Shown piece by piece: positions 11,965-52,597 of a DNA stretch of 64,000 nt (position 1 is the first letter of the stretch; each line of letters starts with the position of its first letter). The DNA lies in the sequence record MH460460.1, one strand, 5' to 3'. The notes below the pieces were generated by a model. The model worked only from the letters and a program-made list of their open reading frames with translations, was not told the DNA's origin and ran no database searches. The position numbers were made by a program, and so were the translations under genes.

Positions 11965-12028
11965 ATCGCCCAATGGTCAAATAGACAATCACCCTAGTTA
12001 TTTACAGATTTCCAGACCAACTTAAAAT

Positions 12029-28389: not shown

Positions 28390-28435
28390 TTCTAAATCCT
28401 CTTAATAAGCACTAACCATTTACAGATTTGGAAAA

Positions 28436-39858: not shown

Positions 39859-40536
39859 TTACTCCAGAATATTTTCGGTACGCGGTTTAAACGTTCCTTT
39901 GTTTCCGATTGCAGATTTGATTTGCGTAGGAGAGAACACAACATAGAAAAAGTGTTCGCCACGTTTCGCAATGATTCCATCTTTCCCGGTTGCGGCTGCA
40001 AACACTTCCGGGAAGCGCCACGATTCCGGCTCACCTGCGTAGATATCATGAAACAGATTATTGCCAGCGGTAATAACATCCATGCCAACAAAGTTATCGA
40101 GATATTCTTTCTTCGCGTTCGCCAAACCTTGATATTCAATATCGTAGTTTTGTGCGAGAAACTCATTGAAGTGAGGACGAGTTAAACCGTTTGCGATTTT
40201 GAAAGCCTGCGTGTAAGTAAGGCGCGGCGGCTTTTCGAAAATGATCGGCTTCGTGATTTTCAAATAGACGGGCATTGTGCTTCCGCTATCTTTGGTATAG
40301 TACCGAGCGAATTCAGGACTATCCGTGAAATAAAATCCAATGCCGTATTCGTCGTTGCCTCCACCCAAACGCTTTTTATCGAAGGTGTCGAAATTTCCCG
40401 GCGTGCCATGATAGACAACGAGCGGATTACCTTGCGGATCTTTGACAACTGATTTTCCAAACCACTTGTCGAAGGCTGCTTGATCTTTTGAAGTGAAGGC
40501 CGAAATAGGCTTCGACAAACTTATTAGAAGTTCCAT
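39859..40536 (-). CDS. ART-PolyVal-like ADP-ribosyltransferase-fold protein (start revised to ATG 40536, MELLISLS)
   Basis: FDKWFGKSVVKDPQGNPLVVYHGT...GIGFYFT...PVYL...DGI...VVFSPTQIKSA matches the ART domain of phage polyvalent proteins. Confidence 0.75.
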   Translation of the reverse strand: MELLISLSKPISAFTSKDQAAFDKWFGKSVVKDPQGNPLVVYHGTPGNFDTFDKKRLGGGNDEYGIGFYFTDSPEFARYYTKDSGSTMPVYLKITKPIIFEKPPRLTYTQAFKIANGLTRPHFNEFLAQNYDIEYQGLANAKKEYLDNFVGMDVITAGNNLFHDIYAGEPESWRFPEVFAAATGKDGIIAKRGEHFFYVVFSPTQIKSAIGNKGTFKPRTENILE

Positions 40537-40555
40537 CGCTAAATCCTTAAAAGAG

Positions 40556-40578
40556 AAAAGCGGGAGCAATCCCGCTTT
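40556..40578 (-). terminator. Rho-independent terminator
   Basis: AAAGCGGGA-TTGC-TCCCGCTTT plus pyrimidine run. Confidence 0.75.
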
Positions 40579-41215: not shown

Positions 41216-42436
41216 TTACTTCAACTTGATTGAAAGTTTCCCGGAATAGATATCCGACATTAAACCAGTGATCGTACTTTCAAACATCACCTCAACCGGA
41301 ATACTGGAAGAGTTGATCGCCAATTCGATATCACACAACGCTTTCTGCAAATAGATGATTGCGATTGGTTCGATATTGAATTTTGCTTTCTTGCGGTTAT
41401 CGTTGAACTTACGCAGTTCCGCAGTTTGGAACTTGTTAGTCTTCGCGATATCGCCGAGAATGTAATGCAAAAGCCAACGCGACTTATGAAGCAGGCCACG
41501 AATATCGGCAGCGTTACGCACGGTACGAATGATTTCGATGAGATCCATTTTGAGATAACCAGTAATGAAATCTACCGCCATATCTCCTAAGTTGATTTCC
41601 GGATCGCTTGCCGCCATATCCAGAACCAAATCAGTATTGAATTCTTCACCGCCTTTAACCGCAGAATAAACGGTCTGGAATAAACCGATTGCACCGCGCA
41701 ACTGACCGCCAGAATATTCAGCGATGGTGCGAATCGCAGCACGCGCTTCTTTGAGTTCCTTTTTGTCCTTCGGCAGAATCTTTTCTGCTTTGGCAATAAA
41801 CTCAATGCGCTCTGCAATCACGTCCGGATCAATCGGATTGATTGGCAACTTAACGCAACGAGAAAGAATCGTGCTCTTAATCTTTTGCGGATCAGTTGAG
41901 ATTAAAACCCAAATGGTATGCGGTGCTGGATTCTCAAGAGGAATAAGGAATTTACTTTCCGCTTGTGAAGTCATCAAGTGCGCTTCATCGAGAATGTATA
42001 CGCGACGGCGATACATCGGGCTTAACGTGCTGCTTTCGATGATGCGTTGCGAGCCTTCAACTTTACCGCTATCGTTGCCCATATCGTAGGTAAGAATATC
42101 CGGATGGAAACCGCTATCAAACGCTTTGCACGATGGACATTCACCGCACGCGTTTAGCGTATCGCAGTTCACCGTTTTACCGATGATGTTACCGAACGTT
42201 GTTTTACCGGAACCCAAATGCCCGCTGATCAAAACAACACTTGGGAAAGTTTTAGTTTTCAACCAACCGCGATATTGTTTGTGGATGTGTTCTTGCCCGA
42301 TGAAATCTTCGATGTTCTTCGGACGATATTTGTTTGCGAAGTTAATCGTGTTGAGATCGAGCAACTCACTTGTTTTCTTTTTCTTCTTTTTCTTTGTGTC
42401 TTTGTCTTCAATGATACGGCGCTTTGCTTTGGTCAT
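41216..42436 (-). CDS. dnaX: DnaX-like clamp loader AAA+ ATPase (gamma/tau-like)
   Basis: KYRPK, GHLGSGKTT, C...CGECPSC zinc module, ILDEAH, SRC motif. Confidence 0.9.
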   Translation of the reverse strand: MTKAKRRIIEDKDTKKKKKKKTSELLDLNTINFANKYRPKNIEDFIGQEHIHKQYRGWLKTKTFPSVVLISGHLGSGKTTFGNIIGKTVNCDTLNACGECPSCKAFDSGFHPDILTYDMGNDSGKVEGSQRIIESSTLSPMYRRRVYILDEAHLMTSQAESKFLIPLENPAPHTIWVLISTDPQKIKSTILSRCVKLPINPIDPDVIAERIEFIAKAEKILPKDKKELKEARAAIRTIAEYSGGQLRGAIGLFQTVYSAVKGGEEFNTDLVLDMAASDPEINLGDMAVDFITGYLKMDLIEIIRTVRNAADIRGLLHKSRWLLHYILGDIAKTNKFQTAELRKFNDNRKKAKFNIEPIAIIYLQKALCDIELAINSSSIPVEVMFESTITGLMSDIYSGKLSIKLK

Positions 42437-42472
42437 TTCTGAATTCCAGTTTGAGGGATCGTATACAGGGAA

Positions 42473-42482
42473 TTTACAGATT
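42473..42482 (-). promoter_or_regulatory. Phage promoter motif AATCTGTAAA (representative copy; others listed in findings)
   Basis: Exact 10-mer recurring 9 times, always on the sense strand shortly upstream of a gene. Confidence 0.75.
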
Positions 42483-42487
42483 TGATC

Positions 42488-42532
42488 AAAAAAAAAGGAA
42501 GAACCGCCGTAGCCTTCGGTTCCTCCTTACAG
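42488..42532 (-). terminator. Rho-independent terminator closing the structured element
   Basis: AGGAGGAACCG...CGGTTCTTCCT followed by a long U-run. Confidence 0.8.
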
Positions 42533-42778
42533 GGTAATAATGAATCGCTCTTTATAGTTATGGGTAAACTCCAAAGAAACCTTTTCGAGTCTCTTTGGAG
42601 TTTACCCGCCGGGCTGTCGGAACCCATTAGATAAACTCCCCCGCAGATTAAAGTGCGATAGCGGGATACGCACCGGGCGAGTCTTACTGTCAGTGACCTG
42701 CCCGTGTCATTCACAAGGCCAATGCACGCTCGCCGCTCCACAACGAACCTTCCTGCGAAAAGTTCTTGTAGCGTGAGT
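42530..42778 (-). ncRNA. Candidate structured non-coding RNA of unknown class
   Basis: Gap between genes with a 16-bp perfect hairpin, two further long stems and a predicted H-type pseudoknot; several mismatches are G-U wobbles only on the minus strand. Confidence 0.5.
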
Positions 42779-43354
42779 TTATAAATTAGAAAAAATTTCC
42801 AGTTTCTTATCCAAAGTCTGAATAAAGTTTTCGTCAAAATCAAACACACGGTCGAACGGAAGATTCTTGTTCCACGGCTGATCGAAAAGAATAATGTGTT
42901 CTGCATCTTCTTCGCTGTTCTGACAAGAGAAGTGTGGACGGTCATCGAAAAGAATAAAATCGTCGCCATCGAAAACTTCTTGCAGAAACTCAACCTTGTT
43001 TGGCGTAGTCATCGGATCAAGGAAGTAGTGATCGGAAAACAAATTCCATTCTTCTTCGGTGAAAAGTTTGCGAGTAAGAACCGCACCGAGTTTGTGATAA
43101 CCACGATGAGAGCACGAATAAATATCGTGTCCTTCCGCAATCAGACGGCGCACTATCGGAATGAAGCCTTCACGGATTTCAACTTTATCCATGAAGTGCG
43201 CAGATTCCATCAGGCCGAGGAAACCGCTACCGCCGTTATCTTCTGTGCAATACTCATCAAGCGGAATATCGTCGCCGTGATTTTCTTTCAGATACTTGAC
43301 GTAGAAAGGATGCGTGCGTAATGCAGTATCATCCCAATCAAAAACGATTTTCAT
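42779..43354 (-). CDS. HAD-family 5'(3')-deoxyribonucleotidase-like protein
   Basis: FDWDDT motif I, SHR, K..., FDDRP, FDQPWN. Confidence 0.85.
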   Translation of the reverse strand: MKIVFDWDDTALRTHPFYVKYLKENHGDDIPLDEYCTEDNGGSGFLGLMESAHFMDKVEIREGFIPIVRRLIAEGHDIYSCSHRGYHKLGAVLTRKLFTEEEWNLFSDHYFLDPMTTPNKVEFLQEVFDGDDFILFDDRPHFSCQNSEEDAEHIILFDQPWNKNLPFDRVFDFDENFIQTLDKKLEIFSNL

Positions 43355-49003: not shown

Positions 49004-49463
49004 CCGACTTCTCCAGAAATTCCATCCTCGCCCTTCCAATTTACAGATCTTTTTCCCGAACCCCCGTCGATCCCCAAATTTTTTCTTCACCTTGAAAACT
49101 TACACAACAAACACATACACCCATACAGCATACAGAGCTACCCTAGCGCTAACAACGCAATAGGATATTCAATATAGATAACCGGGGCCCGGATATACAT
49201 GGTAGGAGCGTTAAGTGATCACTATTATAATATGCAGAAATTCATATACCCCACTCTAGGCACTATCTACTGCCTTAGAATGCGATTCTACTCGATCTGC
49301 CAAAAAAGTTTCGGAAGTTTCGAATTCCGGAAAGTGTGTAAAATTTTAGGTAGGTGTTCGTAAGTCATTGATATGTAACAGGAATATTTTTTGCATTGAA
49401 AAACAGAATGAGTAGATCACCATCAAAACTGCGTATAGACAGCGATCTACTCAATGGAATGCG

Positions 49464-52536: not shown

Positions 52537-52597
52537 AAGTTTCGAAATCAAAGCTGTAAATAGATAGTAAGCAAAATCTGTATACAGGATTCGAAAA

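Follow-up and report, generated by a model that had tools for sequence, protein, structure and literature searches.

Within a 64,000-nucleotide (nt) stretch of the genome of Dickeya phage vB_DsoM_JA13 (MH460460, Salmondvirus, 254 kb), hereafter the window, we identified an uncatalogued, clade-specific structured non-coding RNA of the gene (minus) strand. Its site is the 342-nt gap 42437-42778, between the genes of a HAD-type phosphatase and of a DNA polymerase III delta'/clamp-loader homologue, a gap under which the JA13 record carries no annotated feature and which is 99.7% identical in the Salmondvirus relatives JA11/JA33 and 94.7% identical in JA29. As a first-pass annotation of the same DNA had proposed, this is a structured non-coding RNA of the minus strand with a real pseudoknot and competing helices. 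About 55 related Erwinia, Dickeya and Yersinia phages carry it, at the same syntenic place in every relative tested and in one copy per genome. Both marks of a conserved structured non-coding RNA were found, namely compensatory changes above controls and a sequence that is not protein-coding, and we regard it as close to certain that the element is genuine, conserved and structured, and represents a new RNA family.

Folding of the minus-strand RNA 42480-42785 gave a minimum free energy of -116.9 kcal/mol, against -87.2 +/- 5.1 kcal/mol in dinucleotide shuffles (z = -5.8), none of 100 shuffles being as good. The structured element previously drawn at 42488-42778 is therefore real, correctly placed and beyond chance, but two of its helices proved not to be conserved (see below). 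The conserved body of the JA13 RNA runs from ~42771 to 42562, roughly 210 nt, and is followed by a variable tail and a terminator. Its parts are listed from 5' to 3', with conservation counted over 21 distinct sequences:

42738-42771, minus strand: hairpin P1, 15 base pairs (bp) with one bulged G and a GCA loop
42676-42734, minus strand: domain closed by helix Px (42729-34 with 42676-81), holding hairpin b and the UAAGA bulge
42694-42721, minus strand: hairpin b, occurring as three unrelated complementary sequences
42682-86, minus strand: UAAGA, a 5-nt bulge, part of a near-invariant (G/A)UAAGAC (20/21 sequences)
42651-42675, minus strand: hairpin of stem c, whose loop CCCGC (42661-65) is the 5' strand of the pseudoknot
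42640-42644, minus strand: GCGGG, 3' strand of the pseudoknot, followed directly by the GGAG of X1
42629-42639, minus strand: segment X1, GGAG (42636-39) plus 7 nt, 11/11 pairs with X' (conformer B)
42611-42625, minus strand: apical hairpin with loop CCGACA (CCGUCA in relatives), 4/4 pairs changing on both sides
42562-42607, minus strand: hairpin d (conformer A), formed by X' (42597-42607, ACUCCAA) and X2 (UUGGAGU; GGAG at 42569-72)
42529-42561, minus strand: tail, poorly conserved, with a degenerate copy, AACTATAAAG, of a promoter-like motif
42488-42528, minus strand: intrinsic terminator T2, a 12-bp stem followed by U9

The first detections of the core by nhmmer were in Erwinia phage Yoloswag and Yersinia phage fHe-Yen9-02, and IMG/VR loci retrieved through the clamp loader added two intermediate relatives and ~20 more distant loci. 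The loci L009/L013 and L010/L014 share the JA13 gene order, with clamp loaders 82% and 78% identical, respectively. Two covariance models (R1 and R2) then recovered the full-length core, 132-139 nt, in all relatives, and a blastn search with the Alexandra version matched 46 GenBank records, at a single place per genome and without an annotated feature in 46/46. Altogether, the carriers include Salmondvirus, Yoloswag, pEa_SNUABM_5, Yersinia fHe-Yen9-02 and ~46 Alexandra/AD1/Y3-like genomes, and every homologue is encoded on the gene strand, with the HAD gene on one side and the clamp loader on the other. Outside this group, a pattern scan of IMG/VR returned 35 matches among which only clade members scored with the covariance models, and a pattern scan of limited sensitivity over 185,579 bacterial and archaeal genomes returned 13 matches, all at no more than 27 bits against at least 53 for members. 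The metagenome loci found via the clamp loader were clade members only. Pseudomonas phage PaBG gave no match over 45 kb that take in a gene named gamma subunit in its paper (annotated as beta in the record), a presumed homologue of the query. The RNA is confined to one clade of enterobacterial jumbo phages.

Covariation was measured on a model-guided alignment (A7) of the 21 distinct sequences. Over the 28 pairs counted, those of the pseudoknot, the X1:X' helix, its apical hairpin and upper d, 86.7% of cells were paired, against 41-46% when partners were slid by 1-3 columns. Both-sided changes affected 19 of the 28 pairs (76 cells), and none of 500 shuffles reached any of these measures. Collecting homologues from related phages and testing them for covariation, a check suggested in the first-pass annotation, revealed compensatory changes above controls. 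The H-type pseudoknot predicted there between CCCGC (42661-65) and GCGGG (42640-44) forms as drawn and covaries in relatives, with both-sided changes in 6 of its 7 model pairs and nine versions (CCCGC/GCGGG, CACGC/GCGUG, CCCAC/GUGGG, CCCUC/GAGGG, CCGUGCU/AGCACGG, CCGUGUC/GACACGG, CCGCAC/GUGCGG, CCUGCAC/GUGCAGG and CC(A)CCUCU/AGAGG(C)GG). In a cognate test, its strands gave a mean of 6.1 contiguous Watson-Crick pairs, against 2.9 for non-cognate combinations. Stem c (GUGCG/CGCAC, 42652-42674) also pairs as predicted and covaries. The same test was uninformative for it (4.9 against 4.2 non-cognate) because most lineages share a palindromic GCGC core, so that its support rests on the compensatory variants: GUGCG/CGCAC, GUGCC/GGCAC, GGCGCG/CGCGCC, GGCGCC/GGCGCC, GCGC/GUGC, ACGU/ACGU and AAGCGC/GCGCUU.

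In stem c, Px and hairpin b alike, pairing is maintained by unrelated sequences. Px occurs as GGCGAG/CUCGCC in JA13, GAACGAG/CUCGUUC in L014 and GCGG/CCGC in the Alexandra type, and hairpin b as UGGCCU/AGGUCA, UGUGCG/CGCACA and UUGGUU/AACCAA. Hairpin d (42562-42607), another of the predicted elements, forms 19/19 pairs in JA13 and covaries in relatives: over the full hairpin, 82% of cells are paired against 32-49% in slid controls, with 7 pairs changed on both sides. The mutually exclusive fold proposed with it also stands, GGAGUUUAUCU (42629-39) pairing 11/11 with the 5' arm of d in an alternative helix that covaries. In P1, JA29, L013 and L014 carry one-sided, wobble-compatible changes opposite an invariant 3' strand. 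Cells with G.U outnumber those with A.C by 57:10 and 30:4, an excess indicating that the RNA of the gene (minus) strand is under selection and agreeing with the earlier remark that several mismatches are G-U only on the minus strand. Finally, core identity reaches 98.5, 79.1 and 78.8% in JA29, L013 and L014, respectively, against 86-89, 78-79 and 62-75% for the flanking coding genes; the core is at least as conserved as its coding neighbours.

Two helices of the first drawing did not survive comparison. Of its long hairpin with an outer stem, the inner 15-bp hairpin (42738-42771) is conserved, whereas the outer stem (42770-75/42725-30) has 2-3 of 6 pairs broken and uncompensated in both metagenomic relatives (L013 and L014). 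The hairpin drawn at 42675-42703 pairs in JA13 but is broken without compensation in L013/L014 and clashes with Px and hairpin b. These two covarying helices take the place of both.

The 3' half of the core contains a two-state module built from GGAG, CUCC and a second GGAG. Its segments X' (ACUCCAA) and X2 (UUGGAGU) are invariant in 21/21 sequences amid covarying helices, at a constant spacing of 20-22 bp, and the GGAG of X1 is near-invariant, its third position being A in 19 of the 21 and G in two (Y3 has GGGA by inspection). The invariant CUCC can pair with either GGAG, and such invariance amid covariation is what is predicted for a segment with two alternative partners. Since the GGAG of X1 adjoins and continues the pseudoknot 3' strand, its pairing in conformer B would stack on the knot. 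The X1:X' helix of JA13-type and Yen9-02 RNAs runs unbroken over 11-12 bp, Yen9-02 showing a triple change (U66A in X1, A104U in X', U142A in X2). In the Alexandra and Yoloswag types, it consists of GGAG:CUCC, a small purine-rich internal loop and a 6-7-bp distal helix, which lies outside d and covaries independently (ACUCGG/CCGAGU, CCCAGU/ACUGGG, CCCUG/CAGGG, ACCUUC/GAGGGU). Conformer A (hairpin d) is favoured over B by 4.9-10.9 kcal/mol in 21/21 sequences, by nearest-neighbour energies that leave out the pseudoknot and any stacking on it, and in this conformer the pseudoknot-adjacent GGAG is single-stranded in all 21. Another partner for X1, a Y:X1 helix (AGACUC/GAGUUU) suggested by RNAalifold on six sequences, was rejected: Alexandra-type RNAs (GACC...) cannot form it, and its CUC belongs to Px.

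Beyond the core, the RNA of the relatives is larger (330-430 nt). Within their P1 stand an additional hairpin, whose loop is GGAGU, and T1, a strong terminator-like hairpin that carries a U run; two more hairpins follow, and the insert in Px is bigger, with invariant GCUACC and ACACCGC loops. The JA13 RNA is therefore a trimmed, natural minimal version of this larger form. T1 sites inside P1 were located at L019:2346-2445, in the same region of L018-L031, and at L003:1280-1365; upstream of the T1 U run is an ACAAAA tract with which it pairs (GUACAAAA/UUUUGUAC; CGUAA/UUACG in Yoloswag). Most RNAs examined, though not evidently that of Yen9-02, have the CCGUCA hexaloop hairpin (CCGACA in JA13). 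It caps the X1:X' helix in the Alexandra and JA13 types (L019:~2625-2640; window 42611-42625) and stands in the 5' domain of Yoloswag-type RNAs (L003:~1500-1520, L016:~1980-2000), as if the module had moved.

Searches against known families were consistent with the earlier failure to assign the element to one. Rfam 15 (4227 models) gave no match at gathering threshold over the whole window, and on the element itself, with E up to 10, only terminator-like or chance matches of at most 23 bits against thresholds of 38-80; the larger relatives likewise matched no family. ARAGORN found no transfer-messenger RNA (tmRNA) or tRNA in the window or in L003, L004, L013, L014, L016, L019 and L027, with zero tRNA genes in the window. 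Short resemblances to 16S rRNA, such as CGUAACAAG, are at chance level for their length by our own estimate. A coding origin was also rejected. The 65-codon frame at 42433-42627 (minus strand) has neither a conserved AUG nor a conserved frame, being lost in JA29 (through indels), L013 and L014. In JA13 this AUG lies 8 nt past the GGAG of X1, and the frame spans d, the terminator and the promoter-like motif before ending in ATGA on the clamp-loader start. Two annotated coding sequences overlap the RNA in relatives, L003:1421-1585 (Yoloswag gp204) and L004:1882-2088 (fHeYen902_106c); neither has a homologue even in its nearest relatives, where all frames contain stops, and both are probably annotation artefacts.

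The genes and signals that surround the RNA are as follows:

42779-43354, minus strand: upstream gene, HAD-type phosphatase, start MKIVFDWDDT with a DxDxT HAD motif
42783-42789, minus strand: CTAATTT motif, 6-11 nt upstream of P1 in every lineage
42472-42483, minus strand: promoter-like motif AAATCTGTAAAT, 43 nt upstream of the clamp-loader ATG and outside the RNA
41216-42436, gene strand (same as the RNA): downstream gene, DNA polymerase III delta'/clamp-loader homologue
L004:2154-2351, L003:2220-2423 (unannotated in Yoloswag), L005:2180-2377 and L006:2172-2369: open reading frame (ORF) of 65-67 amino acids (aa) in relatives

For the upstream gene (42779-43354), no Pfam or PDB match was obtained; it matched PHROGs without assigned function and a single named one, a 'polynucleotide kinase' phosphatase PHROG (1.4e-7). 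The label 'nucleotidase' given previously is reasonable but unproven, and a polynucleotide 3'-phosphatase role is as open as one as a deoxynucleoside monophosphate nucleotidase, because the only named match is to the polynucleotide-kinase/phosphatase family. Two genes past the clamp loader, a 236-aa ORF (39859-40569, minus strand) encodes an ART-PolyVal ADP-ribosyltransferase domain (Pfam E = 2.9e-27); it is listed here from a TTG, and the record has a 225-aa coding sequence, JA13_190.

The motif family CTGTAAAT occurs 11 times in the window against 2.4 expected, on both strands and 34-47 nt upstream of many starts. Sites of AAATCTGTAAAT include 52554-52561 (plus strand) and 49039-49046, 42472-42479, 28418-28425 and 12000-12007 (minus strand). 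The motif probably defines a promoter class belonging to the phage itself; its reader may be the phage-encoded sigma factor of the literature, in which this phage group is counted among jumbo phages with a sigma-70-family factor (described for PaBG gene 118). With a weight matrix built from CTGTAAAT-type sites, a strong site was found ahead of the clamp loader in 9 of 10 lineages scanned, that of Y3 being weak (10.6), and in most relatives another stands ahead of the small ORF, weak in the Alexandra type. In JA13 the tail copy scores 8.2 against 23.2 for the clamp-loader site. The matrix detected no CTGTAAAT-type site upstream of the RNA in the lineages scanned, and scans for the sigma-70 consensus detected none there either. 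CTAATTT, which falls within the last codons of the HAD gene in JA13 and is intergenic in relatives, has 3 matches in the window where 2.9 are expected and so shows no enrichment; a role as -10-like box or as 5' leader is possible.

What follows the RNA differs between lineages, the next gene being the clamp loader, the 65-aa ORF or a membrane protein. In ~50 relatives, no terminator comes directly after the RNA: a promoter-like motif and the 65-aa ORF stand between it and T2. A total of 51 phage records (Erwinia, Dickeya AD1 and Yersinia) have this conserved 65-67-aa protein between RNA and clamp loader; it belongs to no Pfam or PHROG family. It is missing from all Salmondvirus genomes, and a tie between the RNA and this adjacent protein was rejected on that ground. 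The JA13 tail is probably the remnant left by the loss of this ORF; tail and terminator together share 57-65% identity with L013/L014, where the core reaches 79%. T2 itself has the features of an intrinsic terminator, and its stem sequence is swapped compensatorily in JA29, L013 and L014. The terminator of the first-pass annotation thus holds, but the orphan Shine-Dalgarno sequence noted in its arm, UAAGGAGG, is absent from these three and is a chance feature of a mere terminator arm. A separate clamp-loader promoter had likewise been proposed, and a promoter-like motif is present downstream of this genuine terminator. The direct succession of RNA and terminator is suggestive of a standalone small RNA (sRNA), but that layout is a derived Salmondvirus feature, secondary because relatives have the motif and ORF in between. 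An anti-terminator pairing between the RNA and T2, sought by eye, was rejected, as only a 6-mer (GGUUCC/GGAACC) was found and it is lost in L014.

Taking these observations together, we tentatively favour a cis-acting, co-transcriptional control of read-through into the replication genes. The RNA would be made within the transcript from the upstream phosphatase operon, a placement suggested by the lack of a promoter of either recognisable class ahead of it. Since the polymerase reaches X2 only after X1 and X', conformer B could precede d during synthesis and could then be displaced by d when the second GGAG emerges. The RNA would then act in cis on its own polymerase or transcript, in a manner akin to the put and EAR antitermination RNAs, and would set transcription past T2 and later terminators into the clamp-loader/replication block before the phage-type promoters of that block fire. 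In every genome it lies on the same strand, at a fixed position ahead of T2 and the clamp loader, with further terminators downstream. In the ~50 relatives without a terminator directly after it, transcripts containing the RNA must run on, and the varying downstream gene argues against translational control of one particular gene.

Several features weigh against this cis-acting role. The RNA has no sequence or structural likeness to put or EAR and is several times bigger than known antitermination RNAs, while its many invariant unpaired residues (UAAGA, the CCGUCA loop and, in relatives, the GCUACC and ACACCGC loops) look more like the protein or tertiary contacts of a stable ribonucleoprotein (RNP) or ribozyme. 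T1 of the relatives precedes most of the RNA and would cut its synthesis without being suppressible by it, and the JA13 arrangement of RNA followed by strong terminator is the usual layout of a discrete sRNA or of an RNA derived from a 3' untranslated region. Hairpin d is without a U tract, leaving a toggle with no evident read-out, and an unrecognised promoter, using for instance the CTAATTT box, is possible. A stable trans-acting RNA or RNP part (scaffold, decoy or sponge) is a possibility nearly as likely as the cis role, though not a probable one. Such an RNA might be freed from the phosphatase-operon transcript by T2 in JA13 and by processing in relatives, its pseudoknot and invariant loops serving perhaps as binding surfaces and the exposed knot-adjacent GGAG as a recognition element. 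This would suit a large multi-domain fold with many invariant unpaired residues, single-copy in each genome and conserved at least like the neighbouring genes, indifferent to the next gene and kept in Salmondvirus after the small ORF was lost; a structurally conserved terminator follows it in JA13-type genomes, and the knot-adjacent GGAG is single-stranded in the favoured conformer A of 21/21 sequences. The stable RNA would nevertheless have no recognisable promoter of its own, and in the majority layout, probably ancestral, no terminator follows d, so that processing must be assumed. Moreover, no partner protein is evident nearby and no homologue in Rfam or bacterial genomes hints at a mimicked host RNA. 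A more ambitious reading, to which we give little weight, makes the RNA the first of a new class of large phage ribo-regulators or RNP RNAs, whose module would be a true switch timing the onset of replication genes and held by a metabolite, by a phage or host protein, or by strand-swapped self-association.

A ligand-sensing riboswitch or classical attenuator, in which an aptamer made of the Px domain and the pseudoknot would hold conformer B, block d and thereby alter the downstream gene, appears unlikely. The competition of X1, X' and X2, with invariant switch sequences beside a covarying pseudoknotted domain, has the right appearance, and a gap of 5-11 kcal/mol is within the range that ligand binding can offset. 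No expression platform was recognised, however: d lacks a U tract and sequesters no start codon, no conserved start codon follows either GGAG, and the JA13 AUG 8 nt past X1 is absent from L013, L014 and all other lineages. Nor does the RNA occupy the 5' untranslated region of a controlled gene, since T2 and a separate promoter-like motif intervene before the clamp loader in JA13 and the downstream gene varies; no Rfam riboswitch matched even at E = 10. Still less likely is that the RNA is catalytic, by self-cleavage or otherwise, or serves as an RNase-directed processing module, in either case parting the mRNA of the upstream operon from later messages. In its size, its pseudoknot and its invariant bulges it shows ribozyme-grade complexity, and the site is at an operon boundary, but there is no Rfam ribozyme match and no evident candidate cleavage site, and the plain H-type knot differs from the nested double knot of ribozymes like that of hepatitis delta virus, as reasoned from helix order. 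We consider very improbable a DNA-level element, either an ACTCCAA...TTGGAGT operator for a dimeric protein or a replication origin. Its half-sites are invariant in 21/21 at their constant spacing, a promoter-like motif comes 7-50 nt on in relatives and the locus is within the replication gene block. Against it, the spacer between half-sites covaries as a hairpin, the strand-specific G.U excess (57:10) fits an RNA of this strand better than a hairpin in DNA or the opposite strand, and the pseudoknot, Px and X1:X' have no DNA-level rationale. An origin was rejected in particular, because the cumulative GC skew makes no turn at the RNA locus and runs straight through it.

Jumbo phages of plant-pathogenic Erwinia and Dickeya are in development for biocontrol, and their gene regulation is almost unexplored. 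To our knowledge, no non-coding RNA had been described before in this clade. At the entrance of the replication gene block, these phages thus carry an RNA of 210-430 nt with a pseudoknot and a two-state module, which offers a tractable handle on early-to-middle gene control and a candidate new Rfam family with an unusual pseudoknot-linked toggle. The trimmed JA13 version may mark its minimal functional core, and a timed switch, if true, would add a class of mechanism that has so far not been reported from jumbo phages. Our literature search found no paper describing an RNA at the HAD/clamp-loader locus; pieces of it could be among the 8,495 unnamed viral RNA motifs (29-151 nt) catalogued in PMC10690425.

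Among known systems, tmRNA is likewise pseudoknotted, ~300 nt long and sometimes phage-encoded, but no tRNA-like domain was found by ARAGORN in the window or seven relatives, and no Rfam tmRNA model matched. GOLLD and ROOL are also phage-borne RNAs of hundreds of nt with many helices and pseudoknots, strongly backed by covariation and of function not known; the present RNA gave no Rfam match to them, is smaller, has no tRNA genes in its window and is restricted to one enterobacterial jumbo-phage clade. The leader of T4 gene 32 also places an H-type pseudoknot, followed by AU-rich sequence, in an RNA of a replication-gene region, a knot also mentioned in PMC10690425. That knot is reportedly a small operator just upstream of the regulated gene and bound by that gene's product, whereas here it is one module of a far larger RNA with no constant adjacent gene. 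Attenuator and riboswitch platforms, such as segments 1-4 of the trp leader, similarly combine exclusive helices, an invariant switch segment and covarying neighbours, yet in our RNA d, the stable alternative, is not an intrinsic terminator and hides no ribosome binding site, and there is no leader peptide and no known ligand. A further parallel in arrangement is with put of HK022 and EAR of Bacillus, structured RNAs within same-strand transcription units upstream of terminators, which act in cis on their own polymerase whatever genes follow, EAR containing a pseudoknot and sitting between operon genes (PMC9378689). They measure ~70-120 nt against 210-430 nt here and share no sequence or fold similarity with this RNA, to which the GGAG/CUCC/GGAG toggle and, in relatives, the terminator-like hairpin within the 5' helix are proper.

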